Shown here: positions 3,201 through 64,000 of the stretch, in pieces
How the letters are laid out: each line of letters starts with the position of its first letter
Position numbering within the stretch: position 1 is the first letter of the stretch
Source of the DNA: Klebsormidium nitens
Taxonomy: Eukaryota > Plantae > Klebsormidiophyceae
NCBI GenBank assembly: GCA_000708835.1
Contig: DF237175.1
Coordinates: forward strand, 70,931-134,930
Direction: 5' to 3'
Length of the DNA stretch: 64,000 nucleotides
Notes under the pieces: generated by a model
Databases searched by the model: none
Seen by the model: the letters and a program-made list of their open reading frames with translations, nothing else
What the model was told of the DNA's origin: nothing
Translations under genes and position numbers: made by a program

Positions 3201-3811
3201 GATCCCATGCACATTGCGCGGTCATGGACCCGGCCCCTGCCATGGTACGTGGCGGCGGGCGCGGCCATGGCCCATGACCCCTTTTTCCTATACTGGCCCG
3301 GCCCCAGCTCCGCTCAGGTGACGGTTCGAGAAGCTTCAAAACCCGAGGTAGTGGCGTGCCCAGTTGTCAGGTTGCAACAAGCATGTATTCAATCACGTTC
3401 TATAGAGGTTTCGTTCTCAGGAAATGTGAGAAAAGAAGACACGTTACATGTTCGAGGACCTAGGTCGGCGTGTGCGTGCGATTGCTCAACAAGTACGGTA
3501 GATGTAACGACTCTAGCTCTCAACTTAGATTAGGCTTAATAAAGCTTACAGTCATGCTAAATCCGTGCCGTAACGACAGTACAGTGTCAACGCCGTGCAA
3601 CGAGACCCTTCCAAGTGTCGTTCGAATATACGGATCTGACTGACATTTCTACCTGCTTTGGCTGACCTTCGAGGCCGGCTAGAGGTTGCGAGCCTAGGTC
3701 TGCGCAGAAGATGCGATAGGCCCACCGGGGTTCCTCCCATGTGCTGACTAGGCGGACTGGAACTCTTACCTATCTTCTTCTGAGAAGTGCCATATCCATG
3801 AAGGTCTGGAA

Positions 3812-11709: not shown

Positions 11710-12295
11710 AATTTGATTGGCAGAAAGCATTCTAATGAGGCTAACAGGGCTCCCCTTGTCTTTCACATAATGAGGAAGCACTTTCTTTTGCCCGTTCGTC
11801 TGCCGTTCGATTAACGTTCTACTCAACCTGCGGGGGAAAATGCGTCAGTCTTCCTTGAACATCATTACAAAACATGCGAGTCAACAAGACGAGAACCCGT
11901 TAACCATGTTCCTTGATCACCATTGCAAGGATCATGGTGGATGCGCTTTTCCTCCCCGACCTCTTTGCCTGATCTACAGCCGAAGCCATGTCTACTTCGT
12001 TTTGCCTTCTCGAGCCCTCCTTTTCTGAGAACCCTCCCTTTCTGTCCATGTCGTATATGACACCACCTTCACGTAGCTTAGAAATTTGTTAAGAGAGAAC
12101 CCTCTTGAATCTTTCTTTGATAGACGCTTCCACCCCAGCCATCGGCCCATCATTCTTCATACTTCATGTTTCACATCGGCCACTCTTTGGAATTCAATCT
12201 TCCACCCCATTCAATCGCAAACCTTCTTTTGCAGACCCCATTTGCAAACCTGTCTGCAAAGCCCAATCGCAAACCCTCTTTTTTTTACCCCGCAG

Positions 12296-15200: not shown

Positions 15201-15636
15201 TTCATCAACAAGGAAGTCTTTCTCGAGTAACGGCTGCTGAACGGCGTTCCATCGGTCTGGTAAGTCTGGGTTGTTCAAGACAGTGTTGGTGACGGAACTA
15301 TCAAGATTGATGCACAAACTTCTCAAAAAGCAATCTGCGCCCCTTTCATGGTGCCATTCTCCTCGTGCAGTTAGCTATGGCTGCTTTCGTACAGAATTCT
15401 CTGTCCTTACAAACTCGCCGTCGATATTCCTCCTGGCTGAGCTTGGACCTATCGTCTATTGCCATTTTCGCAGTGGCGGGGGCGACGGTTCAGTTTTGGT
15501 CCACGACATCCTGGATGGCCGGACACTTTACGGGCTGGGGGCGATCAACAACGGAGCAGTGCGGTGCATAGACACAGGTGACAGTAAGCTTGTTTGCGCG
15601 GGTGATGATGGCACCCTCATCACATACTGCTACTGA
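12296..15636 (+). CDS. WD40-repeat protein (at least 5 exons)
   Basis: GT-AG bounded exons encode GHTEWVTCVTHLPDGRILS|GGMDNRLLLW, GHTASISAVQCSSDGSLAVSSSYDKTLRVW, GHVAPVLDFAWTAGKVVSGARDGCVILW, GHVTALVW...LTGGQDGFLRAWD, VTAGADGMVRVLD and SGGGDGSVLVHD...CAGDDGTLITYCY*. Confidence 0.85.
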
Positions 15637-16690
15637 CTGGGTGGGCTAGTTGTATTTTAGCGGCGGAAATAGGAACGAAAGCCCCTTGTAACATTTGTTG
15701 TACAGTAATGTTGACTGCTGGTTGCACCACCCCGCGACGTATTCGAACAACGAGTACCTGCAACTGGGATGCACTGACAGAAAACGCAACATGAAAAGCT
15801 CAGACTTTGTTCTGCCGTCAAGCTCTGACGACCGAAAGGAAGTCGCAATGAGATGCACCATGTAGGATAGAGGACAGACTGTTAGTATCATCCTGGATGC
15901 ATGACCGTCCGACGGGTACCGTCTCTACGTGCCGCATCTACATTCTGACCACTAGCTACATTCATGCTCAGTCGGAGCTAGTGCGCAGCAGCACGCATGC
16001 CTATACAGATGCGCAAATCATGAGCAAGTACACTGCAAGTTGCGCCAACTTGCCGGGCTATAGGAACCGTCGTTGCTCTATAGTAGCTAGCCGTTCAGTG
16101 TGTGTGCATATATATGCGGATGTCATCGACAGCCGGTCGCCATGACGGCCGGCGCAGCATGGTCGATACATGAATTTGCAATAAGAATGCTGGCGCTGAG
16201 TCAAATGGATAAAACAAGCAATCCTTGAGCTTCCCCAGTGCAGTTGGCAGCGCCACATGTGAGCACATGCAAACCGAAGTACCATCTGAATACCACGAGA
16301 TTGTACCGATCATAGTACCTACGCAAAGCCAGACACATGGACACGATGCAGGTTGCAACTTTTTGCCTATATGTTGAACCTTTGATTAACCTGGGCATGT
16401 AAAGTAGTTGAGCTTCCTGACATATGGACATGAAACGTGCACCCTAAGCACATTCTCCCTAAAGTGATTGACAAAGCCTATCAGAGCCTGCTACTAAAAC
16501 CTCCTAAAAACATAAGCTTTTCAAAGGTGCTCTTCACAGCAGCCTGACTGGGCGTGCTGAATAAGCACGCACAACCTGACGATAAACCCCTACCTCCCCT
16601 CCCCCCAATATCCAGAGTCTCTTCTTATGATACAAGTAGCTCCGCTGAGCTGCCGCAGCAAGACACACGCAGAGTTTCTATCCCCGAGTG

Positions 16691-18804
16691 TCAGGACAAT
16701 ATGAACTTCTCCCGCCCAGTAATCTGCATCCGACATATCGGACAGATCTCGACCTGCACGAAGAGAAAGTGACGTCAGTTACAGGGTGCTGGATTGAATC
16801 TGCATGACTCTGCAAGGTCCGCACTGTGCACTTGAAAGCAGCAAGCGCATGAATCGCCGAAAGAAGCCAAAAGCAATCGCAACATGATTTGGGGAACTCG
16901 GCACTCCATTGCTGGACGATTGGACCGCGGGACTGTCAAAACCCCGCCAAAGCATTATTTGAAAATGTTTACGGCAGGCGGAAAGACTTGTGTAACACTA
17001 CTTTAGGCCCTCCTTACCAGATCACTACAGGTGCCACAAAGGCAGGCATGCCGGCAGGGCTTCAGGAGAACCCGAATCTGCGAGGCAAGAGTCATAAGCT
17101 ATCAGAATGAAGCCACACAATGCAATGTATCACTGTCCAGCAACAGCCAAGTTGTATTTTGCTCCTTTGTGTGCTTTAGAAGCGGAAGGTCTCCATTAGT
17201 CATGTCAAACTCAACACAAAAGAGCAAACATTCATGAGCCTCGGAATGCGTAGGAGGAGAAAGGTTGCGTCAACAGAACACTCTGGCCCAGACTGGTACA
17301 TCGAGCAAAAGACTTTTTACTGCATGGACCAAACGGGCAAGGTATAAGGGAGCGGTCGCAGACATAGTTCCCACCTCCTGATCCAAACAGATCCTGCACA
17401 CCCAAGCAGCTTTCCGCTCCTGCACGAACAGAAACTTGGCCATCAACAGCCGACAAAGAATGCACTGGGCGAAACAAAAGATTCTCAAGTGCAGGGTGCC
17501 TGGAAGACCTGTGTGTAGAGAGGGCTGCAGGGGCAGAGGAATTGGCGCCTCAATGACACAATTAGCATCTCCAGGGTTAAGTAGGGGACAGATTGACACT
17601 CCCGACTGTGCTGCTTACAGAAGCCGCCTGTCAAGTGCCACTGTACAAGTGGAGCACAGGAAAGTTCTGACGGCTGCTCACTTTCGTCTTTATACACGTG
17701 TTCATTGCTAGCTGCAGCAGGGTGGTCGTCTCCTCCAGCATTTCCACGCTCATCTCCCTCCCTTCTGTTGCCACGAACTTGGCAAGTGCTAATTGAAGCG
17801 GATGATCAATCTTCTGCAGCAAAAAGGTTTGAGTTTCACAATCGCTGACTCTGGCAACTGATGATGCCGGTCACTCCTGCCATCAAATCAAGAGGCTTGC
17901 ATCCAATTGGTTCAACATCAGGGTCTAACATTAGGGTTTGCCCTTACGAGAAGACCCCATACACTGCTGCTGCCGGGTGGCCACATTATAGAATGCGATT
18001 GCGTCCCCTCCCTTTTAAGAAACAACATGCAAAATATGATCGCATTCTTAGCTGCAAAGTTTGAGCTAGTTCAAGCCTCTGCCCTTGCTATGAGAGGCTA
18101 AGTGGTGGCAGGATAGGACATCGTGCGCGTTTCCGTTTTCTTTAGAGCATCAACAAGCTGCACATACGTTTCAGCTTTCATTTTATCAATCGGGCTCACA
18201 GCATCAGTGAAAGTAAGCCACTAACCTCGGACTGAGCTTCCACCTTTGACTTGCTGTTTCCCATGCTAACGACCGGCTCTACTAGCCCGAAGACGAAACC
18301 CCCCAGTAGCCCCCCACAGTAGCCAATCCCGCTAAGTATTGCTCCCAGGCCCTGAGTAACAGGAGCCACCGCTTGTATCGCTATGGCTGCGAGGGGTGCG
18401 AGGGAGGGGCCGGAGACACTGTCCTCCGCAGGCAGCCCCTCCTGCCTGACCACCCCTACGTGCCTCAGCCCCTGTTCTGGAACGTTCTCCGTGGTGCTTG
18501 GTCTACGTCTTCCTTCTGGTGCAACGGTGCATCCGAGCCGCAACCTTATCCACCCTGCAAGAGACTGGGACGTACAAGAGCCGAGCCAGGCGAGGGTGAC
18601 GAGGAGATCGCAGGCAAAGAGCCAGGGAAGAGTGGCTAGCTTCAAAATGAAGTTGCGACTGTTCAGCAGGGCAAGGGAAACTATCAGAACTTGCAGAGGG
18701 ATGACTGGGAGGAGAAACAGGGCCGCTAAACCCAACAGGCCGGCTTCTGGCAGGAAGCGGAAACCTAACGAATCTAAGCGGAGGGAGAACGCCGCTGTCG
18801 GCAT
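16691..18804 (-). CDS. RING-HC (C3HC4, IAP/Mdm2-type) E3 ubiquitin ligase; not visible in the ORF track because the RING is split over three micro-exons
   Basis: Phase-0 exons 17813-17682, 17419-17375 (ERKAAWVCRICLDQE), 17077-17018 (IRVLLKPCRHACLCGTCSDL) and 16753-16691 (VEICPICRMQITGREKFILS*), all with canonical AG/GT. An upstream exon ends at 18226. The true start is unresolved. Confidence 0.8.
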
Positions 18805-23200: not shown

Positions 23201-25506
23201 TGACGAAATCATGAATCAGAAAGAGCAAGTTCGTGTGTTTCCCTTTCGTCCGTTTTGTCCGTTGATTCGGTGAGTACCAGTGGCAAGTGGTCAATGTAGA
23301 CACTGGTAACCGATTGCTCTTTTTGCCCCTTCTAAGTATCGCCGCTATTCGGTCGGGTCAAATAAGCATGGTTGACCGACATTCCAGATTGTCTCTTGGC
23401 AGTTCGATCTTTCTCAAAGTTTCGGTTCCGGTTGCCTACAGGATCTTCAGGACGTGCCCCTCTATGCGGTTCTCCCTGGGTCCTCATACGCAGGCAACGC
23501 CGCCCCTCCGGCCCGGGCGGTGGCTCTGCCCCAGCGACCGGGTCAACCAGAGTGCGCTGTGAGTACTAAGATTCCATCATTGACATGGCTTCCGTGGCAT
23601 GCCCTGGATCATGACACGGTTACTGGCGTACTCTATAAAGATGCTGTTTAGACGCTTCTCTTCTCAGGGTCCTTGGTGTGTAAGGAGCGGGGCTAACTTG
23701 GCATCACCTATTCCTCCTTCTGCCGTCTGCGCAATGCTCCTTCGAATTCGCTCCGCAGCTCTGCAACATTCATTAATTATGGGCCACGTCCACTCCGACT
23801 TCGCCACTCGCTGTTTCTGCGAGAGAAGTGGTTTGCCTGGCATCCCCATAGCGAGTTGTTATATCTTGGTGCTTCCTTTTCAGACAGCCCCTCCCTGCAG
23901 CTAGGCTGTGTCCTTCTTCCTTGAATTAGACTTATTCTGCTCTCATAGTGCAGAGACAGGGAACCCAAGATCGACAGCGATAAAGAGGTTCGGACACGAG
24001 GAAATGCATCCTTCTCCAGGACAAGCCGGAAGCACTTCGAGAGCAAGAGAGATTGGCTAACACGAAACCGTGAAAAGAGAGCTCTTTCTCGTCTATGCAG
24101 TACTACATACGGACCGGTACCTGTCAGTACGGCGCCACCTGCAAATACAACCATCCGCTTCCTCTGTCCAAGAGGACCGAACAAACCAAAGCGAAGCCTG
24201 CCAAGGCCAGCCCCCCAGCGGCAGGGTTGACGCCTGCAGGCCTGCCCAGGAGGCCCGTACGTACCGCGTCGAATTGTGTCTTTGTTTTCAGCCGTTAAGG
24301 TGCAAGTGTGCATGCGCACCGGTTCCAAGAATGAGAGATATGGCGTCTTATCGAGTCTGCCAGTCTTGCCCGTACCGCTCAAAGAGCGCCTATTGACAGC
24401 GATTGGCTCATTGCGTTCCCTTGCCCTGCTTGAAGATGTCGTCCAGCGAAAGGTCCTCCTTCGGTGTTGACTTGATGGCTGTACTGTCGATTGTATGCAA
24501 CGCCTTTGTCCTTTTCATAAATCGGACGTCAGGTAAAGCTTTGCCTTCCGACAGTTCTCGATAGATTTACACCGAAAATTCTGACTTGAGAAATATTGGA
24601 CCCTCTTTCTCTTCCTAAAAGCTGACATGACTGGCTTCCCGTGTGCAGGGCGCGACTCTGTGCGCGTACTACATGAAGACGGGCCTCTGCAAGTACGCCC
24701 CCGACTGCAAATTCGACCACCCGCCCCCCGGCGAGGCGGCCAAGATGGCCTACCGCGCAGCCGCAGCCGAGAAGGCGGCGCCACCCGCCGCGGGAAGCGC
24801 CGGGGGCGTCCCGAGCAAGGACCAAAAGGTGGAGGAGCAATCGGCTGCTCAAACCGTGGAAAATGTCGCAGTGGGGAACACGGACGGACAAGGGGAGGCG
24901 GTTAGAATCGAAGAAAAGGCTCCGGAGGAAGCAGAAAAGGAGGGCCTTGCGGAGCAGGAAGGCGGAGGGTTTGAGGGCGAAGCTTGGAGCCCCGAGGCGG
25001 GCGTTGAGACGGAGGCGGAGGAGGGTGCGGACGTCGTCGGAGGGGAGCATGTCTCGGAGGGTGCCGTCGAGGGGAACGCGGGAGCGGAGCAGGAGGCCGG
25101 TGCGGCTGAAGGTGAGACACCGGCTGAAGCAGCAGAACAGGGTCCGGTTGAAACGGCGCCGACCGAAGCAGCAGAACAGGGTCCAGTTGAAACGGCGCTG
25201 ACTGAAGACGCGGAGAAAGAGGCAGTGCTTCCTAGTCAGGCGGAGGTTGAGCAAGCGATTGAGAACGAGGCGATGCAAGCTGATGAGGCGGAGGTTGCGC
25301 AAGCGGCGGTCCCTGCCGAGGGGCCAGGAACGGTCGAGCAAGAGGAGCAGGCAGGGGGGGAAAACGATGGAGACGAACTTGATTTCGTTGACGCTGAGGG
25401 GCTGGAAAACGAAGATGCGGAGGGGTACGAAGGAGGTTTGGAACATGAGTCCATGCTTGAAGGCGGCGTGGATCTGAACGCGGAACCTACTGACGAAGTT
25501 GAATAA
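20244..25506 (+). CDS. HUA1: HUA1-like tandem CCCH zinc-finger RNA-binding protein with a long acidic C-terminal tail
   Basis: Five C-x8-C-x5-C-x3-H fingers across exons, each preceded by P(Q/L/R)RPG linkers. [16 protein letters not shown]|[15 protein letters not shown] matches the HUA1 linker as I recall it. ATG 20244, stop 25506. Confidence 0.75.
25126..25200 (+). repeat. 39-bp in-frame coding tandem repeat ([11 protein letters not shown] x2)
   Basis: gaagcagcagaacagggtcc(g/a)gttgaaacggcgc at 25126 and 25165. Confidence 0.85.
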
Positions 25507-28500
25507 CGGGACTAGGTGCAATGAGTAATGGATCGAGAGGAGAAGGTGCTTATATCAGTTTCTTGGCCATCTGATATTCTTGATCTCTGCACAAGTAGGA
25601 CTAGGTGATTCCAATGAACAACTTTTCAAAAGCACGGCGGACATGGAATGGATGGGGCAGCTCATTGCCTTTGAGGGGGCTATGAGGTCCATGTTGTGAA
25701 CTGCGGATGCATGTTTTAAGAGTGGTACTTCGGTGGCAAACCACCAATCTATGTTATTTCGTTGGCAGCATTCCATTTGCTAGCTAGCTTAGCCGGCTCC
25801 ATGCAGTTCGATATACGGGCTTCATAATTAGGGGTTGCCTTTGGAGTTCCAGCATCCGACTAGTAGCCCCCGGTCCTTGCCAGCAAGGAGCTTTTAAGGC
25901 GTCCCGATGGGATGCAACCGTCTCAGTATAGTGCAGACATGCTTACTATGTTGGGGCACTGAAGCTACATCACGTGCGCCTGATGGACATAGCTTGACAA
26001 AGGAAGCATTGCAATAACATGCATGACCACGGAGATGCTTGACGTCGGCCATACCTCACAGTCCGAGCTGTTCTATATACTCACCACGCATGGTTTCCCT
26101 GATGATGTATTGTGATACTTGCCAATTGTTTCAAAAGGTCACGCGCTTGATCAGATTAGTAGACCGGGTCTGAACAAACCTGTAGAAGAAAATCAATGGT
26201 AGTATTCGAGTTCCGTCTAACACGCACTATAAATGGCCAGCATTTGGGTCCTTTTGACACGCGCTAAATCGGGCTAGCTAGCATTCAGGTCCCTTGTGCC
26301 ACTCGCAATGTCAAGCAAGCTTACAGTGTTGAACATCAAGATGTTTGTTAGACATTCGATGATGCACAACCAGTAGGATTACACCTTTCCTCTAAGCGAA
26401 GTCAATCATCTACGACCATTTCAATATAGTAGTCCAAGAAACAGAAGTACCCCGCCTCTTTTGCACCCCGCTCTTCCTCCTTGGTGATTGTGAGCCTGCA
26501 GCTTGAGCACACATAGGTTAAGAGGCATTCGCCTGAAAATAACCTTCTGAACACTGGAGTAAGCCGAATACGAATTGCGGCGGAAGCTCTTGAGAAAGCA
26601 GTGGACTCCCCAGGACTTCAGGAACAATCAGAAATAAAAGGGTACTACCTAGACGTTGTACGGTACGAAGAGCAATTTTGCACCAGCACAGATATTCATA
26701 CAACTCAATAACTGTATGACGCGAACGCGCACACAAACTCATGCGAAACCTGCTATTCAAAAGGGAAGAATCTCTGCTTTTTCCCCACACCCCATGCTAC
26801 GACAAGCACAATGCAGCTAAAATGGACCTGCTCGAGAACGAGCACACTTGCTGCTCACCTGACTGCAGACGCCTGTCGCAACAGATCAACATATTAAACA
26901 ATGCTTCATGTTAAGCAATGTATTTGACCAATATATTACAATGTATGTAAAACAGTTTGTGAGCGCTTACTCTTGTCCAGTGTAGTGTTTGAGATACTCC
27001 TCGTAGTCTTCCTGGCCCGAGAATCTTGACCCTTTTGGTGGGTGCTTTGGAAAGAGCTCCCGCGTGACGATGATGGTGCGCTTTTCTATGGCCAGAAGAG
27101 ACAAAGTGTTAACTCAGATCCTAATGTCCCCCGGGTGTCCCCCTTCCTGCAGGCGCTTATGAGAAGTAATGCAACCAAGGGAAAAACCTCTTACACCAAT
27201 GGCCTGACAGAAAACAGTCCCGCCAACAAACCTGTCCCACCAGCATCCATGTGCTCCGCCGTGCCAGTACTAATACAAGTTTGATCAGAAGCCGAGCTTT
27301 AGAGAGAAAAACAGTGAGCTTTGATCAAACAACTTCGATAGAATGGAGAAGAGCTCAGGCCCCGCGCCGCTGGAAGCGCAATTGATAAGGCAGGCCCGGC
27401 CCCCTATAAAGCTGTCCGGTCACGGTCACTAGCGCGACGTCAGTGGCCGGGCGCGCAAGCGGCCGCCGCAGGCCGATACGGCGGAGGGTTTGCAGGGTTT
27501 GGGCCGCGGCGCGCAGCAGCCGCGCCGCGCCGCGCGGATCGGATATAGAGCTAGGAGCTACATGCAGCTAGCTAGTACGTAGTCACCTAGGACAGGTAGA
27601 TCGCCACAATTGGGAGATCGGTCTTAGTAGGCTGCATGACACGATGTTTTTGTTGCACGGCCGGCGCGATTTGAACAAGCGTAATTTTAACAGCAAGCAT
27701 AACACTCACAATGCGTTACATTGCAGACTGCCCCGGCCCGGCCTTCCAATGTTGAATATAAAGCCATATAAGCATATATCCAAAGGTTCGATTTTCCCAA
27801 GTGCTCTGCCTGGGTCCTGCAAGTGGTGCCATGGATGCTGCATGATTTACATTGAATCTCTGCGGATTGGCAGGCTCGATCACATTCTGAGGATTAACTT
27901 AAACTTTGGGCGGCAATTGTCTTGATCCCTGGATAAGTCTACTTCATGGAAGTCTCTATCCAAAATCGTGATCAATCTCGATCCCATTGGTCAAATCATT
28001 GTGACCATTGAATATATTACTTAGTTGGATTGAGAACACCGATTCCTATTGAAGCAGAGCTAGAGACGAGCATAGTGCGCAAAAAAGTAAATCACCCCGA
28101 CGATTTCTAGTGAAGCGGAAATCGCTGTTCCCACTGTCTCCAATGATGCAAGTGAGCTATTCAGGCTCACATGTGTTCTTGTCCCTGCTTGATTATACGC
28201 AGTTAAGTTTGCCCGTTGCCAGGCTGTTGAAACTTGCATTGCAACGGCTGATTGCATGAACTTCGATACGACTGCCGTCCACAAAGTGCAGATCGACGTG
28301 CATAATCCCGCATGCGAAGGATACTTCATGCAGAGGCGTCAGGCGTTATTATTTTGAAACCTGCTCTCACAAGAGGATAACTCCTGACGGTAGACATTTC
28401 TTACGAGAACGCGAACAGTGCCTTGGCGGGCCAACAATTAGATTGACGACAAGGAGAAACAACAATCAGTGAGCCGTTCACTCCCCCCAGCAAAGTGGAT

Positions 28501-46111: not shown

Positions 46112-47531
46112 CTACTGTACCCTTTGTAGGTTATGCAACTGCTGCTCATGTCCCCCAACTTGAAGGTGCCCCTCGAGCCCCCCTACCCGGTTCACCTCGC
46201 CCCCAAAGCCTCCCATCGCGGCCACAAAAGACCCCGGCCCAGGCCGCAGCGGCATGTCCTCGTCCCGCTCCTCCCTTACCCTCTTCCCTCGGCCTTCTGG
46301 TACATGCTCGTGCTCCCGACACCGCCTCTTCGACCCCACCTGCAGCGACTCTGGCACGTTCATGCACCCCCTGACGGTACACCGCTTGGTTGTGAAGTCC
46401 TCCATCCCTTGCAGCACGTGCTTCTCGCACCTGGCCGCCCGTATTGAGCTCTGGTTGGGGAACACGTACTTGCCCCGCTTGTCGCACCCCGGCTCACTGC
46501 ACCAGCTATGCGCCACATCCCGCATCCCTGGCTCCGCGTGCTCCTTACAGCGGAGGGCTTTGTTCGTGCCTGGCCAGCCGTACGTGGGGCGCTTGGCGCA
46601 GGGCTCCCTCTCCCCAGCCCCGCAAAGCTTGCTCACGGTGTTGACCATGTCCGGGTCAGCGTGAACCTTGCAGGCGACCTGCATCAAGGCAGAAGTGCCG
46701 CTGTCTTTGCATGACTGGATTGGACTCCAAGCAGCATTTCCAACGTGTGGCAAGCCCAGATTATCTGCAATTTCAGGCCAGGGCTGGAAGCCTTGCACTC
46801 GTCCACTTCCAACCTTTCTCTGCTACTCCTTTAAGATGTGACCATGAAAGGCATACTCGTTGTGCAGTCGCTGAAGGATGGAGTCCCGTCATTCGTCTGG
46901 AACAGTATCCTTGCACAACAGGTTTTGAGATGCCCTGCCAGTAAATGGATGGAATATTGCGGCCGCCTGAGCAAGGACTGCCAAAATCAGATTTTGAATT
47001 GCAAACTAGGCCAGTGCTCAGCTTAGCTTTTCTTGTCACCTCAAGCAGAATTTTTAGTCTTACCGCACTCTTCCCATGCCAGCCAAAGGTCGGCTGCTTA
47101 GGGCATGCCCGACCTTGTCCACACCTTCTCTTTGCCACGTATTTGTCCATTCCATCCTCCTGATGATCCTCGCACACAATTGGCTTCAAGATGGCCCAGC
47201 CATATTCGCACTCCTTCAGACACTCTTCCGACGCTGTGCAATTCCAAACTCGCTTGTTGGCAGGCCGTGCAGCAGCCAGAGACTCTAGGCTTCCTACAGG
47301 AAGAGTAACTCTTGGCTTGCTACCGGCAGGGGGGGCTCCCCTGGCCTCCTTCAGTGCATCAATTGCCTGTGTCAAGATATTTGCAACGGTATTTTCGGGA
47401 GTTTTGTGTTTTGCATTCCTCTCAATTTCCATACCCAGCTGGGCTAAGAGGGACCCCATGACTTCTACGAGACTCCCCTTCAAGGCCGTTGAAGGAGCAA
47501 AGACTAGAATGCTCTGCCAAAGCCTATCCAA
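46112..47531 (-). CDS. Intron-containing protein with about 5 EsV-1-7-type cysteine-rich repeats; 5' end unresolved
   Basis: Repeats such as CPKQPTFGWHGKSA|VACKVHADPDMVN, CAKRPTYGWPGTNKALRCKEHAEPGMRDV and CSEPGCDKRGKY...RCEKHVLQGMEDF. Intron 47063-46679 is GT-AG, phase 0. Confidence 0.75.
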
Positions 47532-55889: not shown

Positions 55890-56340
55890 GAATCAATCGG
55901 AGAATCTGAAAGAGGCTAGCATTGAATAACTGTGCTAGCCCCCGCGCAGATCGGATCTTATGCGAACTGACACTTACGGTCGGCCCGAGGATTGAATGTT
56001 CGACAGTGACGTGCCCCCAAGGCAACTGAATCATGGTGACCGCCATCGACATGCTATCAAATAGCTGAAACCAATGATACTTGTTGAGTTATTGTAAGGC
56101 CTGTACGTACTACATGTGCGGCGCATGCATATGCATCAATGATGCATGAGTCTGCCAGTGGCACAGATTTTTTACCCAGGCGCATGCGCATGCATGTTCG
56201 ACTACACTGAACATGGCATGTACATATACTACCTAGTACGTATATATTCATCCCTATAGGCTAGCTAGATCGACCTAGATGAGTCCCGGGCTGAGCACCT
56301 ATTGATAGCTATATACTTGCATATATGCACATAAGGATAC

Positions 56341-56878
56341 ATATTGCACCCGTAAAGGCTTAATTAAAACTTTTATTATTCATGGATAATTAGCGGTAAT
56401 TCTATCCCCTATTTTTTCGCGGGAGGTCTCACTCAAGCCCGCATAAATCGCCGCAAATTACGGATAACGTGGTAATGGTATGTCAAGACTGAATGGTAAC
56501 GGTGAAGTTGCACGTTCTTCACATACTAACATAGCTCAGTCTCCTTAAGTACTAACACACTGCGCGCATTTTTATCAAATTTTTAAAAAATAATGAGTGC
56601 ATACCGTGGTATGTCGCACTAAATGTTATAAACAAATTCTCTTTAAGTGTTAACTAAATTGTTTTTTATATATTAGTTGGAATCATCGCGAAACAATACC
56701 GTATTCTGTTTCACTCCTCAACTATATAGACTGAGATAGCCTTAAGTAGTTTTCGTTTTGTCTCTCGCAAATTCCATGCAAATATCGTGAGACCTCCCGC
56801 GAAAATATAGGGGATAGAATTACCGCTAATTATCCATGAATAATAAAAGTTTTAATTAAGCCTTTACGGGTGCAATAT
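56341..56878. repeat. 92-bp inverted repeat (1 mismatch) around a 354-bp AT-rich spacer
   Basis: 56341-56432 ATATTGCACCCGTAAAGG...GGGAGGTCTCAC is the reverse complement of 56787-56878. Both outer ends are the self-complementary ATAT. Confidence 0.95.
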
Positions 56879-57329
56879 TGTTTTTCGTCACGAAATAACC
56901 GTGCCCACCCATCCACCCTTTGCAAAATTCAATTTTTTTTTGAACTAGATCGGAAACGCTGAACCCGTGTGTGGTAATGGTCTTCACTCCCACATCCATT
57001 ACCGACCCGCGCAGATCCCCGCTAAACTTTTTAGAAATCTTCAATCTAGTTCTTGAGAAATTCGGGGAGACCCTTCCCAAGTGGGGAGCACGGGGAGGGC
57101 ATTTTTTCAAATTTATATAATCATTCACCCCCTTCCAAAATATTTTTTATAAATATGCCCTCCCCGCCCTCCCCGCTCCCCACTTCTCCCTCCCCACTTC
57201 TACAAAAAAAAAAAAAAAAATACATTAAATACTAACACTGAAACTACTGTCTAAATTTAAAAAAAATAATTAAATCTTAAAACTGGACGCGGTTGGATTA
57301 CTCTTTTTTTTCTCTCATTAAATATAAAA

Positions 57330-57710
57330 ATGACAGATCTGAAGAATATTATGCGCCAAATCGTTGTACTTGTGTACAAAGAACAAACTCAGAAGCTCAC
57401 GGTACAAGAATACGGTATACTCAACAAACATTATGAGAATCTCATCACATATGTGATCGATGATAAGAATGTGATTGACACACTTGAAGGTCGAGTCATT
57501 TTAAATGGTCCAGATCTATCAGAATATAACATCAAATATGAAATCTATCTGACACCCGAAATAATCTATCCAAACGCCCTTCTAAACCTCAGAGTCTTTT
57601 ATGAACGAGATACATGGGATCCTGTTCCATTTTCTATGGACGTTAATCGAAAAATAACAATGTCTGATCCACATAATATTCAGGTAAGGCTGGATTGTCT
57701 AGACTGGTAA
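57330..57710 (+). CDS. Hypothetical viral protein, 126 aa
   Basis: Intronless ORF with ATG in TATAAAAATG context, preceded by TCTCATTA. No family recognised. Confidence 0.65.
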   Translation: MTDLKNIMRQIVVLVYKEQTQKLTVQEYGILNKHYENLITYVIDDKNVIDTLEGRVILNGPDLSEYNIKYEIYLTPEIIYPNALLNLRVFYERDTWDPVPFSMDVNRKITMSDPHNIQVRLDCLDW

Positions 57711-57750
57711 AGCGTCGACGAGCACGCTAACAAGTAAAGCCGTTGTTAAT

Positions 57751-58446
57751 CTAAGTAAAATCAGGTTGCCTGAATCCTGTCCCCCGTCGCGTAAAACCCG
57801 CAGTTTGTGCCCCGCCTCCTGATGGTCCTGCTCCGTGTCCTGCTTCGCCTCCTGGGGCTGCTGCTTCCTGAGCCCCTGCTGCTTCTCCTGCTTCCTGAGC
57901 CCCTGTTGCTTTTTCTGCTGCCTCTCTTTCATCAGGTTGACGTGATCTGCGAACTCCCCTGAAACCCCAACTTTCCCATCTCTTCGCAGGAATGACTGGA
58001 CGTTCCATGTAGGACTGAATCAGTGGGAAGTCGACCTTACTAGCCATTATAAAAGCCCACACCAAGTCTACTGCAGAGTATATGATTGCAAATGTGATTG
58101 CCGCTACAACATACGGGGAAACTTGGTTCACTGCATTGGGAATCTCTATTTTCAGCCAAATGCAAGTGGAACTGTCTGCAGTAAAGAAGTATAGTGGAAT
58201 GTATGACTTCCAACCTGTTGACATCCAGACTACACTTTCGCAAAATTCCCTTCGAACACCTTCCAGAGCATAAATTATCCAGCCCTTCGTCCATTCCACA
58301 GTCTTGCTGACTACGTAGATGAACAAACTGTGCAGCCAAAACTGACACCAAGTGATGATCCGCTCAAAAAGCTTCATCCGCACCACACCCGATCTAGAGA
58401 GATTCCACCGTGCGCGATCGCCCATTGCTTGTGTAGGCTGTGCCAT
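57751..58446 (-). CDS. Hypothetical viral protein, 231 aa, with a probable TM segment and Ala/Glu/Gly-rich tail
   Basis: Intronless ORF with hydrophobic VSPYVVAAITFAIIYSAVDLVWAFIMA. Convergent with the 57330 ORF. Confidence 0.55.
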   Translation of the reverse strand: MAQPTQAMGDRARWNLSRSGVVRMKLFERIITWCQFWLHSLFIYVVSKTVEWTKGWIIYALEGVRREFCESVVWMSTGWKSYIPLYFFTADSSTCIWLKIEIPNAVNQVSPYVVAAITFAIIYSAVDLVWAFIMASKVDFPLIQSYMERPVIPAKRWESWGFRGVRRSRQPDEREAAEKATGAQEAGEAAGAQEAAAPGGEAGHGAGPSGGGAQTAGFTRRGTGFRQPDFT

Positions 58447-58601
58447 GGCTTCTCTTCTCTTTGTCTCCTGCTCCTATTTTGTCGAATGAAGGAGAAGTGA
58501 AAGTTGGAGAAGGTCGTTCTTACAAATCTTTACTGGCGTGCCATCGCCTCAACATAATTTGTTCAATCAGACTCGATGTCAAGAAGCCTCCATCTGGCAT
58601 T

Positions 58602-58740
58602 TCAGTCTGTTGACTTTTGTATCAGTCAGTTGACTTTTGTATCAGTCAGTTGACCGCTGCAAACCGCGTGCAACCTCCAAAAGCGGAGTCTACGCCAGCC
58701 CACACAACCTCCAAAAGCGGAATGCACGTGCAACGTCCAG
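58602..58740. repeat. Cluster of short direct repeats between divergent viral ORFs
   Basis: 20-bp TCAGTC(T/A)GTTGACTTTTGTA x2.6 (58602-58653) and 17-bp CAACCTCCAAAAGCGGA x2 (58671, 58705). Confidence 0.85.
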
Positions 58741-58863
58741 CTAGTAAGATCAAACAGAGGCTGCAAGTCCACTGCAAAACCGCTGTCAATTATGGCTACA
58801 TAAAGAAGCTCATTCCACTTCCTGCTCATTCCACATTCAGCATCCTTCTTTTCGTTTCTTGCC

Positions 58864-59388
58864 ATGGCTTCCTTTTCTTCCTCTGGAGATCCAACCTGGA
58901 GGGTCTCTGCCGGACAGGTCGACAGAGACGGGCTCGAGGAGTCTCTTTTTGGGTTCGTGCTAACGAGGTTTCCTGAGAAGATGGTCAGAGACACAAGCGT
59001 ATCGAAATTGGACTACATGAAGTTCTTGTCTTACTGGTACGTGTATGAGGAGCATGAGAATCACTATCTGATCCAACAGATAAGTGAGGGAGTGTTCAGG
59101 TTTGATTCTGTGGTGGAGTTAGACCGATCAGGATGCTACAGGGAGCTCAGTAAGTCGGCAGGCGAACTCCACTCATTGGGTGAATCAACGCTGGAAGTGT
59201 ACCGGTCTAATTATGATTTTGGTGCTCTTTACATCAAGACCATAATGTTTGATTTTGTTCCCACTGGTGAGGATTACAAGAAGGCACACGAGAGGGATGC
59301 TGAGAGGGATGCTGAGAGGGATGCTGAGAAGGAGGAGAAAAAGGAGGGAAAGAACGTGAAGGAGACCGCCAAGAGAGCCAAAAAATAA
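58864..59388 (+). CDS. Hypothetical viral protein, 174 aa, with charged ERDA repeat tail
   Basis: Intronless ATG-TAA ORF containing the 12-bp unit gagagggatgct x3. Confidence 0.6.
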   Translation: MASFSSSGDPTWRVSAGQVDRDGLEESLFGFVLTRFPEKMVRDTSVSKLDYMKFLSYWYVYEEHENHYLIQQISEGVFRFDSVVELDRSGCYRELSKSAGELHSLGESTLEVYRSNYDFGALYIKTIMFDFVPTGEDYKKAHERDAERDAERDAEKEEKKEGKNVKETAKRAKK

Positions 59389-59433
59389 GGTGAGCGTTTG
59401 GCTTCGATATATTTTTATCTCATCAGATAGAAA

Positions 59434-59775
59434 ATGCTAGGTTTGGTAGAATTTGTAAAACTTAAATTTGCTGACGTTGAAAGAGATCTTACTCCAGTCG
59501 AGCAGAAAAGACTTTGGGAACTATGTGAGCAGCTGTTGATATCCTTTGATGAACTCTGTGATTCCGAAAGCTTTGTGGGTGTCAAAGTAAACAACTTAAA
59601 CATGGCATTTCATAGACCAGAAGAGGACTGCTTGTTTTACAGCAGTGACAAGCACCGTCTTGTGTGCACAATGTTCAGAGATCGTATCGATAGCACGCAT
59701 CAATTTATGATTCGAATGGACGAAAGTTCCAAGGAAGTTATTTCTTTTAACCTGACAGACGTTAGCAAGTTTTAA
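59434..59775 (+). CDS. Hypothetical viral protein, 113 aa
   Basis: Intronless ORF preceded by TCTCATCA-GATAGAAA-ATG. Its stop abuts the reconstructed recombinase stop at 59777. Confidence 0.6.
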   Translation: MLGLVEFVKLKFADVERDLTPVEQKRLWELCEQLLISFDELCDSESFVGVKVNNLNMAFHRPEEDCLFYSSDKHRLVCTMFRDRIDSTHQFMIRMDESSKEVISFNLTDVSKF

Positions 59776-59776
59776 T

Positions 59777-61036
59777 TTAAAGTTCAACGATCTCCAGGCT
59801 CAACTGCGCAATCTTTTTTATGCACTTGTCAACCTGCTCACGCAAATCTTTGATCTGTTGCAGTTTGGCGTTCTTCTCGGCTTCCTTTGCTTCCAACTGG
59901 GCGGGTGTAGTTGCGATATTATAGAATCCTTGTATGTCCGCAGAATTTCCCATTTGATAGGCTAGCTCTTCGCGGGCTTTGATGCTAGGATTGGTAGCTA
60001 GATGCTGTGATTTTTAGATGGCGAATTGCATTGCAGCCGATCGAAGACTTTAGGACTCTTTTAAAGGTATTTGTGACACACTTAGAGAAGGTACCACTGG
60101 TGTAGGGATCTTGATTTGTGTTCTGGAATAGCCACTTCCGCTTGTGTTCCATCATGCTTGTTTTAATGATTTCAAATAGAACCCCTGTCAGCTTCACCTC
60201 GTACTTATCATACGTCTTTGCTGTTTTGTAGTTTCCTATGCACATGTCTACGTACTTGTTGCGTGTATTCACAAACATCTTGTTCGGCTCCTCAGAGTTG
60301 TTGAAATCTGCCTGGCTTTTCAAGACCTCCATCTGACAATAGTTTTCAAGTCTTCGTGGCGGAATCAGTGTGTACATGGCAACTAGCAAATGATCCCTGC
60401 TCGCATATTCGTCCTTGCGTAATCGCTTTTCACATTCTAGGACGTCTTTCCATTGAATCGGTTTGCCGTTCAACATGACAGATGCCACACGTGGTGCGTT
60501 GTCTTTTGCAACCTCTTGTGCTGCGCCAGCAGCCTTCATCATCGCATCAAACCATTTCTGTTGAACTGCATCTGTTACCTGCAACGTAGTGTGCTTAATT
60601 AGCGAGACGAACGCTACCAAGTATCCGGTGCGTGAATTCATGTTTGGATAGCGGTTCACAATATACTCAATCACCTTATCCGGTTGATTCACCAACTTTT
60701 GCATGATTTCTCATTGAGACAACGACTAATAAAATTTGTCTTGCGCACGTAGTCAGCCTGCGTGTCCGTTGCAAGGTTTACGTTTGCATCGATCTGTCTC
60801 GACGTGTCTGCAATAGTGACAGTTTTTTCTTTGCCCCTCCCTTTGGCTGCTCTCCTAGGTTTAGGTGCAGGCTTGGGTACAGGTGGTGGTGCTGGTGCTG
60901 GTGCGGGTGGTGGTGGTGCTAGTGCGGCTGCTTTGCTTCGTGTGCTTCTAGATCCCGCCGCAGCACTCGAAGGTTCTGGTTCATCATCGAGACTGATAAC
61001 TTTACCAGCATTTCTTGATGTGCGTGTTCTTGGCAT
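59777..61036 (-). pseudogene. Tyrosine recombinase/integrase of about 420 aa, disrupted by two frameshifts (~60707 and ~60005)
   Basis: Three frames join: MPRTRTSR...TQADYVRKTNFISRCLNEK / IMQKLVNQPDKVIEYI...YTLIPPRRLENY...NYKTAKTY...GCNAIRHLKIT / HLATNPSIKAREELAYQMGNSADIQGFYN...EIVEL*. This gives the R..K..RH..(N)..Y catalytic order of tyrosine recombinases. Confidence 0.8.
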
Positions 61037-61110
61037 CTTTCGTCTTTACTATATGGAAGATATATAAACTTCTGGTTCAATTCCCGCACAAATTATCTCA
61101 TTAAAACTAA

Positions 61111-61350
61111 ATGGAACAGACGAAGGATATTTCTATTGACGAATACAAGGCTATGCACGCTTTGTGTTGCAAGTTCTACTATAAGAATATTCCTGAGGAG
61201 AAGAAAGAGATCATGCGCGAAAGGCAGCGAACTCGGAATCGCGAAAAATACCATAATGACCCAGACTATAGAGCGAGGGTCAAAAATTACATGCACAATT
61301 ACTGCGCTAAAAAGAAGGCAGCAGCATCCGCATCAGAACCAGACGTTTGA
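61111..61350 (+). CDS. Small basic viral protein (79 aa) with KYHNDPDYR motif
   Basis: Intronless ORF preceded by TCTCATTA-AAACTAA-ATG. Confidence 0.6.
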   Translation: MEQTKDISIDEYKAMHALCCKFYYKNIPEEKKEIMRERQRTRNREKYHNDPDYRARVKNYMHNYCAKKKAAASASEPDV

Positions 61351-61382
61351 AGTGCTCGCGTCAAAAACTTTTAATTTTGTGA

Positions 61383-61405
61383 CAAAAGAAAACCATTTAA
61401 AGAAA
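61383..61405 (+). promoter_or_regulatory. Viral upstream motif class I, copy 1
   Basis: CAAAAGAAAACCATTTAAAGAAA; TTAAAGA ends 26 nt before ATG 61430. Confidence 0.55.
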
Positions 61406-61429
61406 TAACACCTAATATAAATAGTAAGA

Positions 61430-61762
61430 ATGGACATCGAGATGTTGACCGCTACAATAAAAGCATTTGCGCTGACCCAAATTGCTGAACACATGGAGAA
61501 GGTCGGACAGAATCTGACCGCATCGAAACAAACCAAGAAGTACAAAGAAGACACAGAGTATGCAGAAAAAGTTCGGACTGCCGCTCGCGAGCGTTTTCAC
61601 AAACTCAGCAAAGAAGAGCGTGACTAGATCAATAAGCGAAGCAATGAACGCTATAAGACAGACCCCGAATACCGTGAGAAAAAGAAACAAAAGGCAAAGG
61701 AAAGATCAGCGAAGGTTCGTGAGGAACGCAGGGCGGCAAAGGCAGCCGCTTCCCAAAAGTAA
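61430..61762 (+). pseudogene. Small basic viral protein (110 codons) interrupted by an in-frame TAG at 61625-27
   Basis: The frame continues after TAG as INKRSNERYKTDPEYREKKKQKAKERSAKVREERRAAKAAASQK*, repeating the pre-stop KYKEDTEYAEK motif. Confidence 0.7.
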
Positions 61763-61782
61763 TTTACATTCCCTTTTTTGAA

Positions 61783-61807
61783 CAAAATGCAAACTACTTA
61801 AAGACAA
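61783..61807 (+). promoter_or_regulatory. Viral upstream motif class I, copy 2
   Basis: CAAAATGCAAACTACTTAAAGACAA; TTAAAGA ends 23 nt before ATG 61828. Confidence 0.65.
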
Positions 61808-61827
61808 TTCATTTTTTATGTTCACAT

Positions 61828-62607
61828 ATGAATCCCCCGGGCACTATTTTGTCTCCCGGGCAAGTGTATGCACAACTTTTGAAAGAGAATCTCTTCTTGA
61901 AGACTGGCGCAAAGTCGTTCCGTTACTTCTATTACGCTGGGGGGAACAAAGAAGGTCGGTTCGACTATTTCATGAAACGGTTTGGCAGTTCCTCTGATCA
62001 GCCCGACTTTGTGGAGGAGTGTGAATGCACTCACTGGATCAAAGAGAACTGCTACGTGGAATATATGCCCGACGACGTGCGATGCAAACCGCCCAAACTG
62101 TTTGTGGTCGGGAACTGCTGCATCCGAAAATTTCTGCCTCGTGACAACCAGGGTAAGACCTGTTCAGACTGCCGTATGCCTCACAAGAATCGTAAAGACA
62201 ACTACTGTACCCCCTGCCGCGAAAAGCGCGACGGTCGCCGCTGTAACGAGTGTGGCAAGAAACAGAGGAAGAGCGAGGTAGGCTACTGTCCCGACTGCCG
62301 GGCAGCTTTCGGCCGTCGGATGTTCGAGAATCGGATGAAGGAGATTGCGCAGATTGCCCGCCGTCCGATGGACATTAATGACTACATGCGGAAAATCGAC
62401 CGCGATACGAACCCCGACGAAATTGACGTCCGTCCGAAATATGTGCCAGAAGCGTCGAATTGTATTTGGCCAATGGGCAAGTACAAAGGTAGGTTTGTAC
62501 ATGAGATTGAGGAGAATTATGCCACATGGGCTGTCCAAACCATCCGTCCGCAAACTCCAATCGTCGGACTCTCCCTGGGCTATCTGAAAGCCAAGTTTGC
62601 ACTTTAA
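61828..62607 (+). CDS. Multi-zinc-finger protein of giant-virus type, 259 aa
   Basis: YAGG...CECTHWIKENCYV...GNCCIRKF, then CSDC/CTPC and CNEC/CPDC pairs. C-terminal WPMGKYKG..VHEI...YATW resembles the PFGKYKG (DUF3820-like) module. Confidence 0.7.
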   Translation: MNPPGTILSPGQVYAQLLKENLFLKTGAKSFRYFYYAGGNKEGRFDYFMKRFGSSSDQPDFVEECECTHWIKENCYVEYMPDDVRCKPPKLFVVGNCCIRKFLPRDNQGKTCSDCRMPHKNRKDNYCTPCREKRDGRRCNECGKKQRKSEVGYCPDCRAAFGRRMFENRMKEIAQIARRPMDINDYMRKIDRDTNPDEIDVRPKYVPEASNCIWPMGKYKGRFVHEIEENYATWAVQTIRPQTPIVGLSLGYLKAKFAL

Positions 62608-62642
62608 CCACAAAACATCATTTTTCTTATTTCATTTTCAGT

Positions 62643-62666
62643 CAAAATGAAAACTACTTAAAGAAA
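62643..62666 (+). promoter_or_regulatory. Viral upstream motif class I, copy 3
   Basis: CAAAATGAAAACTACTTAAAGAAA; TTAAAGA ends 20 nt before the primase ATG 62685. Confidence 0.65.
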
Positions 62667-62684
62667 TGTCGCCAGGTATATAAA

Positions 62685-64000
62685 ATGGCAACAAAACTTC
62701 TGAACTTCCTCGCACCCCGCAAAGTAGCAAAAGGATCTGAATATACACACACTGGTTGTGCTGGTGACTTCAAAGGGATTTACTATATCAAGACCGAGCA
62801 CTATGATGAGTTCATGGCACTGTATAACGCGGCTCTCAAGAAGAAAGTGCATCTGACATTGACTGAAAAGCACAAGGGTCAGTCCCCGATCTTCATCGAT
62901 TTTGATCTCAAGCAGGACTCGGCTACCCGTATTTACACTGCCGACCACATCAAGGCACTGTATGACGCCGTCACCAAGGAAGCCTCTAATTACGTCAAAT
63001 TTGACGAGGAAGCCTTGGAGTGTTTCGTACTCGAGAAGCCTGCCCCGAGGAAGGATAAAAATCACCCATATAAAGACGGTTTCCACCTGCACTTTCCCGA
63101 CCTGGTCACCTGCCAGTCTGTCCAGAAAATTATCCGTACAAACCTGTTAGAATCTGGCACGATTTCCGACATTTTTGCTGACGCCACGTTCCGCAACAGT
63201 TTTGAGGAAATGTACGATGCAGCGGTTATCGACAAGAACCCGCTGCTATTATACGGTAGTACTAAAGATGGTACAGGTCCTGCGTACACGTGCACGTACA
63301 AGTTGTGGGGTCAGGACGGCAAAAGCGAAGACTGTGAAGACGAACTACCTGATCTAACTGACCGCCTCTCCATTCGCAACAAAGATGTCGCCCTGCCTGT
63401 ACTTGAAGAGAAAAAGGCGGAGGTTGCCGAATATGCCGCGCGTGCAAGTGCCAAGGCTGAAGCTGCCAAGGTTGTTTGTGAAACTAAGCCCAAGTGTAAC
63501 ATGGTACTTCTTGGCGAGGTACAACAGCTTGTGGCTATGCTTTCTCCCTCACGTGCGGACAACCGCTCTGACTGGCTTGCACTCGGTTCAAGCTTGAAGA
63601 GCGGCGACGAAAGTTTGTTGCCAGTCTGGGATACATTCAGCCAACTCTCATCGAAGTACAAGTCTGGCGAATGTGAAAAGTTGTGGTACGACTTTAAACC
63701 GGGCAACACCATTCGCAGTCTGCACTATTGGGCTAAGTTGGACAGTCCCGACGAGTACAAGAAGTACAACGAGACCAGCCTACAAACCGCTCCGATGACG
63801 TCACTATCTGGCAGTCATTATGATGTAGCCCAGGTTGTGTACTCAATGTACAAGTTTGACTACGTCAGTACAAAAGACCAGAAAAACAACACTACTTGGT
63901 ACAAATTCAGCGGGCATCGTTGGGAAGAGTGCGTCGGTGGGGTTGACCTCCGCAACAAACTCAGTACGGATGTGTACAAAGCGTACATTACGATGTCAAA
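62685..64000 (+). CDS. D5-like primase-helicase, N-terminal part (AEP primase, PriCT-2, D5_N); truncated by the window end
   Basis: Open for 438 codons from ATG 62685: YTHT, PIFIDFDLK (motif I), FVLEKP, KDGFHLHFP (motif II), MYDAAV, LLYGSTK, LSIRN, RADNRSDWLALG...WDTFSQLSSKY...LHYWAKLDSPDEY (PriCT-2), HYDVAQVVYSMYK, WYKFSGHRW (D5_N). Confidence 0.9.
   Translation, partial: MATKLLNFLAPRKVAKGSEYTHTGCAGDFKGIYYIKTEHYDEFMALYNAALKKKVHLTLTEKHKGQSPIFIDFDLKQDSATRIYTADHIKALYDAVTKEASNYVKFDEEALECFVLEKPAPRKDKNHPYKDGFHLHFPDLVTCQSVQKIIRTNLLESGTISDIFADATFRNSFEEMYDAAVIDKNPLLLYGSTKDGTGPAYTCTYKLWGQDGKSEDCEDELPDLTDRLSIRNKDVALPVLEEKKAEVAEYAARASAKAEAAKVVCETKPKCNMVLLGEVQQLVAMLSPSRADNRSDWLALGSSLKSGDESLLPVWDTFSQLSSKYKSGECEKLWYDFKPGNTIRSLHYWAKLDSPDEYKKYNETSLQTAPMTSLSGSHYDVAQVVYSMYKFDYVSTKDQKNNTTWYKFSGHRWEECVGGVDLRNKLSTDVYKAYITMS

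Follow-up and report, generated by a model that had tools for sequence, protein, structure and literature searches.

The left end of a probable endogenous polinton-like virus with foldback termini in the streptophyte alga Klebsormidium nitens

A stretch of 64,000 nucleotides from contig DF237175.1 of the Klebsormidium nitens genome (assembly GCA_000708835.1, positions 70,931 to 134,930 of the forward strand), referred to here as the window, was analyzed for a virus-like element at its right end. The G+C content was 0.511 over positions 1–56340 and 0.447 over 56341–64000, with the step at 56341 and a trough of 0.31–0.39 spanning 56.2–57.8 kb. The left 56 kb contained open reading frame (ORF) pieces with WD40, RRM, and glycosyltransferase domains in Pfam, which, judged from their sequence, would be exons of host genes, as expected. 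From the 56341 side to the window end, nine gene-sized, closely spaced ORFs were counted on both strands, with no signs of introns. An initial annotation of this DNA had seen host-type spliced genes stop at approximately 55.9 kb, followed by an inverted repeat and nine intronless, tightly packed ORFs; the repeat and the ORFs were recovered, and the repeat, with 92-nt arms that are 99% complementary, starts exactly at the compositional step. Judged from its relatives, the part 56341–64000 is the left 7.7 kb of an element of approximately 27 kb, the rest of which would lie beyond base 64000.

The last gene of the window (62685–64000, plus strand) encodes the N-terminal half of a primase-helicase (438 aa), which is uninterrupted and cut by the window end. 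In this frame, Pfam identified AEP_C962R (E 1.8e-50, approximately 62748–63299) and PriCT_2 (E 1.4e-16, approximately 63522–63734), and the closest solved structure by sequence was the C962R primase (E 8e-7). In the full-length relative P0155 (877 aa), D5_N was found at residues 403–544 (1.8e-16) and DUF5906 at residues 589–697 (4.3e-8). D5_N begins at residue 403 in the full-length relatives and the window stops at residue 438; the D5_N and superfamily 3 (SF3) helicase domains were seen only in those relatives. Of the AEP-PriCT2-D5 primase originally proposed, the archaeo-eukaryotic primase (AEP) and PriCT_2 parts are therefore present in the window, whereas the D5 part is visible only in the relatives.

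A protein search with the primase in a representative library returned 4150 matches, with identities of 92%, 84%, and then 42%. The two best matches were K. nitens proteins on scaffolds DF237580.1 and DF238079.1, and the other members of their clusters were encoded on contigs of the Joint Genome Institute (JGI) samples 3300060284 and 3300060285. The nearest relatives of the element are thus annotated K. nitens genes (primase 84–92% identical), in line with the streptophyte alga that the initial annotation had guessed as the host. A brown-alga host with a phaeovirus, first suspected from ORFs with an EsV_1_7 motif at 46–47.5 kb, was abandoned on account of these Klebsormidium relatives. In IMG/VR, 410 primase relatives were found, many of them on contigs of giant-virus metagenome-assembled genomes (MAGs), which bears out the assignment to the giant-virus D5 type; the identity to the giant-virus MAG primases was 30–35% over nearly the full length. 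An IMG/VR scan with the window primase alone gave no match. The closest IMG/VR primase relative (40% identical) came from a small virus, a contig of 16 kb that also encodes an A32-type ATPase and carries two GIY-YIG genes. When 79 IMG/VR loci were compared, no gene of the element was shared except the primase. The sole match in a phage collection was to the PriCT_2 stretch of a cyanophage primase. One further environmental contig, L008 (Ga0480284_0000333, 34.8 kb), carried a primase-helicase of 36% identity among other genes of unknown kind.

A tyrosine recombinase gene lies upstream on the minus strand (59780–61036). In a tblastn comparison, its intact 414-aa relative P0161 was covered to 100% by the window at 82% identity, in three pieces that fall in two frames and so imply at least two frame changes; the aligned pieces themselves contain no stop. 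The family of P0161 comprised 17 members and one distant relative. Its best Pfam match was to Phage_integrase at E 0.064–0.07 (0.064 in the window), below the gathering score, and neither a PDB profile search with the recombinase nor an IMG/VR scan with the recombinase alignment gave a significant match. The family alignment (A2) retained Arg-Arg, a Lys within a hairpin-like motif, Arg-His, and a Tyr near the C-terminus, all assigned by eye; the first catalytic His was replaced in most members, and the later His was replaced in every member except the most distant one. A Foldseek search of PDB with the AlphaFold model of the recombinase returned tyrosine recombinases as all of its top 50 matches, the best being Cre (4.7e-4), together with Tn1549, lambda, XerH/XerA, IntI, and TelA (rank 50). 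Judged from the motifs and the predicted fold, we accepted the family as a real, very divergent tyrosine recombinase. The initial annotation had identified the enzyme correctly, but the gene is not the single ORF that it had described.

The left terminal repeat region (56341–57268) was delimited by alignment to the relatives, with the host junction at 56340/56341. An outer foldback arm of 92 nt (56341–56432) is 99% complementary to an inner arm of 92 nt (56787–56878), and the two are 354 nt apart. A second inverted repeat (41 nt, imperfect, with G-rich arms and an A/T-rich centre) lies at 57080–57177 and was kept in loci L002, L004, and L007. L002 is contig Ga0590114_0007595 (26437 bp), L006 and L007 are parts of contig Ga0590115_0006827, and L003 is the K. 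nitens scaffold DF237580.1. Positions 56321–57268 of the window aligned in reverse with L007 12169–11244, the right end of a metagenome copy, at 75% identity. The conserved sequence started at the same terminal base in the window (56341), in DF237580.1, and at the right end in L007, and the flanks next to this base were unrelated in all three contigs; past its right terminus, L007 continued for 5.6 kb with a G+C content near 0.51 and no match to the element. A shared terminal base beside unrelated flanks speaks most strongly for 56340/56341 being a true insertion junction rather than an artefact of assembly, and it supports the end of an integrated virus-like element that had been proposed at this position.

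The foldback arms differed at one base in the window and showed no mismatches in L007, whereas the arms of the window and those of L007 differed from each other by 12–13 bases and one indel. As the arms are complementary within copies yet differ between copies, the two arms change together. The window and L007 agreed in the relative orientation of the foldback loop. The inner arm was lost in the K. nitens copy L003, and the outer arm was absent from L004. A separate miniature transposon formed by the 538-bp foldback was considered and rejected, as it lies right at the terminus of the element in independent copies, it occurs in both terminal repeats, and there is no other copy in the window. 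The foldback and the short inverted repeat are possible candidates for a replication origin, a recombinase site, or a structure for end maintenance. The short G-rich inverted repeat (window 57143–57217) recurred once more within the element, just 3' of the primase-helicase gene (L002 8660–8737). A metagenome scan for the terminal sequence, using a 29-base degenerate string common to the three copies, gave no match, and the collection evidently lacks samples carrying the element.

The full element was read from two overlapping metagenome contigs (L002 and L007). L002 was colinear with the window from the foldback interior to the primase at 77–83% DNA identity and then ran on; the overlap between L002 and L007 was 100% identical, and Ga0590115_0006827 carried the remainder of the element. 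L007 11135–11912 was the reverse complement of L002 1–779 (98.7%). On this comparison of relatives, the full element is approximately 26.7 kb long, with terminal inverted repeats of approximately 1 kb, each ending in a 92-nt foldback. The related copies and the matching right terminus that the initial annotation had named as a check were thus found, on K. nitens scaffolds, in metagenome copies, and at the right end in L007. In the relatives, a variable left arm was followed by a block of recombinase and replication genes (the tyrosine recombinase, three small genes, and the AEP-PriCT_2-D5_N-SF3 primase-helicase). The right arm encoded the predicted double-jelly-roll capsid protein, together with a P-loop protein, a protein of 286 aa, and three large fibre-like proteins. 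Searches of Pfam and PHROGs over nearly all the element genes gave no match except for the primase-helicase and a small DUF5754 protein; the latter is a right-arm protein of 94 aa (P0195, L007 8636–8920, 5.7e-11), the sole significant family match besides the primase. By alignment offsets, L002, of which bases 1–18466 were covered, has its start approximately 240 bp in from the left terminus, and its end would fall only a few bases from the right one. Such an extent would be compatible with a free linear genome and with an assembly break alike.

The capsid assignment concerns a 404-aa protein (P0160) with 20 relatives, four of which are annotated K. nitens genes. No sequence match of this protein to any named protein was obtained from Pfam, from PDB sequence or profile searches, or from an IMG/VR scan with the capsid alignment. 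A Foldseek search with its AlphaFold model yielded 88 matches in BFVD and 125 in PDB at E<1e-3. The top 50 PDB matches were all double-jelly-roll capsid proteins (PBCV-1, SGIV/iridovirus, Sputnik, mavirus, PM2, and PRD1), and the leading named matches in BFVD were nearly all of this kind; the best BFVD match (E 1.1e-21) was an unnamed entry. P0160 is accordingly predicted from its modelled fold to be a double-jelly-roll major capsid protein, and it alone among the trio described next is supported by a fold test.

Two distant environmental contigs (L009 and L010) shared exactly three genes with the element, encoding the capsid protein (33% identity), the P-loop protein (24–27%), and the right-arm 286-aa protein (28–29%). 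The P-loop protein (P0163) has a Walker A motif, with other P-loop matches below threshold; its homologue in L009 matched Pox_A32 at E 0.006, below the cut-off. A homologue search with it found close relatives only, and PDB sequence and profile searches gave nothing significant. The 286-aa protein (P0178) had no family or PDB match. We infer that the trio consists of the capsid protein, a candidate packaging ATPase (the P-loop protein), and a candidate penton (P0178). Three large right-arm proteins (885, 719, and 446 aa) have few basic residues and resemble fibre proteins: a sub-threshold match to T4 gp36 was found, and the 885-aa protein shared a short stretch with a 1194-aa Peptidase_S74 protein of L008.

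Across approximately 30 genes of the 26.7-kb element, Pfam detected no protein-primed PolB (pPolB), rve integrase, or maturation protease, which counts as negative evidence only, and no capsid protein, PolB, VLTF3, A32, or RNA polymerase of nucleocytoplasmic large DNA viruses (NCLDVs). Among the viral genes that the initial annotation had suggested seeking in the rest of the element, a capsid fold was thus predicted in the relatives, whereas no pPolB or PolB was detected and the A32 signal of the L009 homologue (E 0.006) did not reach significance.

The copies appear to have diverged as functioning genes. The ratio of nonsynonymous to synonymous substitution rates (dN/dS) between copies was 0.06–0.17 for all tested genes, with dS up to 0.9, and 0.10–0.17 for the primase. 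Such low values indicate that the copies diverged under protein-level selection. The element gene families held full-length and many truncated proteins. From the sequences, several insertions of diverged, functioning variants would fit better than a single dead insertion that was later duplicated. The window holds a copy that is partly decayed and no longer autonomous, as its recombinase is frameshifted and one small gene contains a stop.

From these data, we consider it likely that an endogenous polinton-like virus (PLV) of the Klebsormidium genome has its left 7.7 kb at 56341–64000. With a predicted capsid protein and candidates for the minor capsid protein and the ATPase, and without a protein-primed polymerase, an rve integrase, or a protease, the make-up of the element matches the published definition of PLVs. 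The initial annotation had left the choice between a giant virus and a PLV; the PLV is retained, whereas the giant virus is disfavoured by relatives of approximately 26.7 kb that are bounded by inverted repeats and show no giant-virus core genes in Pfam. In the proposed life cycle, the primase-helicase would start and unwind the replication of the element, and the replication polymerase would be borrowed from the host or from a co-infecting giant virus, as no polymerase is encoded in the element. A small icosahedral particle would be built and filled by the capsid protein together with the candidates for the penton (286 aa) and the packaging ATPase (the P-loop protein). The tyrosine recombinase would insert the genome by its ends. 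The host junction coincides with the outermost point of the terminal repeat, as opposed to any internal position; perhaps the two ends meet first and form an inverted-repeat site of the kind that tyrosine recombinases recognize.

Several points weigh against this classification. The window does not reach the genes of the capsid, P-loop, and 286-aa proteins, and their presence in this copy is extrapolated from relatives that are 79–86% identical in DNA sequence. None of these three proteins, nor the recombinase, had a significant match by any sequence method. Confidence in both AlphaFold models is low, with a mean predicted local distance difference test (pLDDT) score of 51.6 for P0160 and 56.4 for the recombinase; the template modelling (TM) scores were low for both, so that the fold calls draw on uniform match lists and not on good superposition. 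Each copy examined shows one junction at most, which leaves a target-site duplication or a common core site out of view, and the mode of insertion is therefore inferred.

Five other explanations were weighed. In one, the element is the same but its recombinase acts mainly as a telomere resolvase that keeps the hairpin or foldback ends of a linear genome, with insertion achieved by other means. The arms, 99–100% complementary within a copy and approximately 14% different between copies, would suit such an enzyme, and faint hints of a protelomerase came from TelK_N (E 0.16, in a single family member) and from TelA, which ranked 50th among the fold matches. These hints are far below significance, the best fold matches were the Cre, lambda, and Tn1549 integrases, and gene conversion between the arms or selection on the stem would explain their co-evolution without a resolvase; we regard this explanation as unlikely. 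A virophage in the strict sense (Maveriviricetes) would also account for the size, the terminal repeats, the tyrosine recombinase, and the double-jelly-roll capsid protein, and virophage capsid proteins were among the fold matches. However, no cysteine protease was detected by Pfam among the approximately 30 genes, the fold matches do not favour virophage capsids over those of other lineages, and the capsid protein is short (404 aa), which makes a virophage quite improbable. The edge of a giant endogenous viral element (Nucleocytoviricota), comparable to the Phycodnaviridae-like insertions in Klebsormidium, was suggested by the D5-type primase-helicase with its many relatives in giant-virus MAGs and by earlier reports of Phycodnaviridae-like NCLDV core genes in K. 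flaccidum/nitens (PMC5294986). Nonetheless, the full-length relatives end in inverted repeats at approximately 26.7 kb, their approximately 30 genes lack the NCLDV matches sought in Pfam, and only the primase is shared with the 79 IMG/VR loci; a giant element is very improbable.

It is harder still to credit that the junction is an assembly chimera, or that DNA of a free virus was wrongly joined to host DNA. Related contigs and scaffolds did often break in or beside the element (L001, L003, and L004), as would be expected of a repeat that troubles assemblers. The junction, however, falls at the exact terminal base, as in two other contigs with different flanks, and the frameshifts and the stop are expected of a resident, decaying copy. 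The least probable explanation is a non-viral, Crypton-like DNA transposon with a tyrosine recombinase and an acquired viral primase. The many decayed genomic copies, the recombinase itself, and insertion by the ends would agree with a transposon, but distant environmental contigs have kept the capsid-fold protein along with two partner genes, and strong purifying selection was observed between copies on all tested genes.

As a PLV, the element can be compared with known systems. The integrated PLVs of Guillardia theta pair an AEP-S3H (AEP-superfamily 3 helicase) primase-helicase with a tyrosine recombinase near the ends (PMC4642659). Like them (Yutin et al. 2015, PMC4642659), the Klebsormidium element is an insertion of tens of kb with terminal inverted repeats, a primase-helicase in the giant-virus domain order, a divergent tyrosine recombinase near one end, and a module of a predicted capsid gene with candidate minor capsid and ATPase genes, without pPolB, rve integrase, or protease. 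It differs in residing in a terrestrial/freshwater streptophyte alga and in its 92-nt foldback ends, and its recombinase and morphogenetic proteins are too divergent to match named families by sequence. For PLV insertions, a length of 15–30 kb, a shift in G+C content relative to the host, and terminal repeats are typical (Bellas et al. 2023, PMC10120064). In these traits, and in combining a capsid gene, a primase-helicase, and a tyrosine recombinase, the element resembles PLVs of the PgVV/TVS type and the copies of them integrated in protist genomes (PMC10120064); a protein of Tetraselmis viridis virus S1 appeared only at rank 45 of the capsid fold matches.

With virophages (Sputnik, mavirus, and Organic Lake groups), the element shares the character of a small virus with a double-jelly-roll capsid, and some of them also have a tyrosine recombinase, a primase-helicase, and integration; unlike them, it has no maturation protease detected by Pfam. 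Its primase is an AEP of the C962R/D5 kind, in contrast to the TVpol fusion of Sputnik-like virophages (PMC4642659). The capsid module and terminal inverted repeats are also found in Polintons/Mavericks, from which the element differs in that no protein-primed PolB, rve integrase, or protease was found in it by Pfam. The order AEP_C962R, PriCT_2, D5_N, and SF3 helicase is that of the D5/C962R primase-helicases of Nucleocytoviricota, but here the gene is set in a 27-kb element without any other giant-virus gene.

The element clearly exemplifies a kind that is already known, with representatives in many algae. The initial annotation had suggested an undescribed lineage. A survey had already counted seven capsid genes of the PLV/virophage type in K. 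nitens (PMC10120064, Table S1), so the suggestion holds only in part; we found no description of the Klebsormidium elements themselves in the literature. What makes the element of interest is its host lineage, how extremely its proteins have diverged, and the co-evolving terminal foldback, which is the one unusual trait.

Among algae with a sequenced genome, Klebsormidium is one of those most closely related to land plants, and we know of no virus isolated from it. A small capsid-encoding family with intact-looking and decayed copies under purifying selection indicates that such viruses have circulated in the Klebsormidium lineage. With giant-virus remains in the same genome, this lineage is a place to ask whether the interaction of small integrated viruses with giant viruses known from marine protists also occurs in streptophytes. 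As a repeat, the element also explains the scaffold breaks and odd gene models at these Klebsormidium loci. Scaffolds and contigs L001, L003, L004, and L005 ended repeatedly within or just past the primase gene, and the K. nitens gene model KFL_011300020 was not colinear with the translation of its range. The K. nitens copy in DF237580.1 (3882–6233) had the same left terminus without the inner foldback arm, and most of its left arm did not align with window 56544–59359, so that this stretch has been deleted or replaced.

The remaining genes of the window differ in how far they are conserved between copies. A very A+T-rich ORF of 126 aa (57330–57710, plus strand) was specific to this copy, with no Pfam or PHROG match and no counterpart in related loci. 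The 231-aa ORF at 57751–58446 (minus strand) is a homologue of a 286-aa gene in the left arm of the intact-looking relative; 63% of that gene was covered by the window at 82% identity in tblastn. The 231-aa ORF itself had no family match, and its C-terminal part was different and repetitive. In place of a 186-aa gene of the relative, the window has a 174-aa ORF (58864–59388, plus strand) that is hardly similar to it (22% of the protein matched at 46% identity) and had no match in other loci. The initial annotation had listed four left-arm ORFs without a recognized family, and two of them, the 126-aa and 174-aa ORFs, prove to be copy-specific.

Between the 174-aa ORF and the recombinase gene, a conserved, uninterrupted gene of 113 aa (59434–59775, plus strand) was 81% identical over its full length to its counterparts in L002 and L004, with a dN/dS of 0.12 relative to L002. 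Downstream of the recombinase, a 79-aa ORF (61111–61350, plus strand) is a homologue of an 80-aa gene of the relative (59% identity to L002 and 96% to L003); in tblastn with the 80-aa gene, a second piece overlapped the next gene and was probably a cross-match. A homologue of a 113-aa basic protein of the relative followed at 61430–61717 (plus strand), with 87% coverage, 72% identity, and one in-frame stop in tblastn. The uninterrupted 259-aa Cys-rich protein at 61828–62607 (plus strand) was identical over its full length to L002 at 79% and to L003 at 97%, with a dN/dS of 0.06–0.15. Its zinc-ribbon hints were sub-threshold only, and the Zn-finger protein of the initial annotation is thus a Cys-rich protein with no significant family match.

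A 14-nt motif occurred in five copies at no more than two mismatches, all within 56.7–62.7 kb, compared with 0.36 copies expected by chance in the whole window. Three copies were located 20–40 nt upstream of three consecutive plus-strand genes, the last three of the replication block: at 61390–61403 upstream of the homologue of the 113-aa basic protein (two mismatches), at 61791–61804 approximately 25 nt upstream of the 259-aa gene (exact), and at 62651–62664 approximately 20 nt upstream of the primase start codon (exact), all on the plus strand and all at the same position in L002. A motif common to three replication-block genes, with its position kept between the window and L002, suggests a common transcription signal. 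A further copy with two mismatches lay on the minus strand in the foldback loop of the terminal repeat (56739–56752).

A bolder form of the PLV reading would make the element an undescribed, family-level PLV lineage restricted to streptophyte algae, with morphogenetic proteins beyond the reach of sequence methods and with foldback ends kept by its own recombinase as an end-resolving enzyme; such a virus could also parasitize the Phycodnaviridae-like giant virus that has left remains in the same genome, by means of the upstream motif that its own replication genes share. This is conceivable, but we hold it to be doubtful.

An Rfam search of the whole window gave no match, and no tRNA genes were found when they were sought at the junctions. 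In the host part, long ORFs overlapped on both strands at 24529–25521 (330 aa and 287 aa) in a region with a G+C content of 0.56 and a strong GC skew; a Pfam scan of the minus-strand ORF gave no match. Two adjacent ORFs at 46115–47531 (minus strand) matched the EsV-1-7 Cys-rich motif (E 5.4e-20 and 6.5e-4), a family that is named for a protein of a brown-alga virus and was unexpected in a streptophyte alga.

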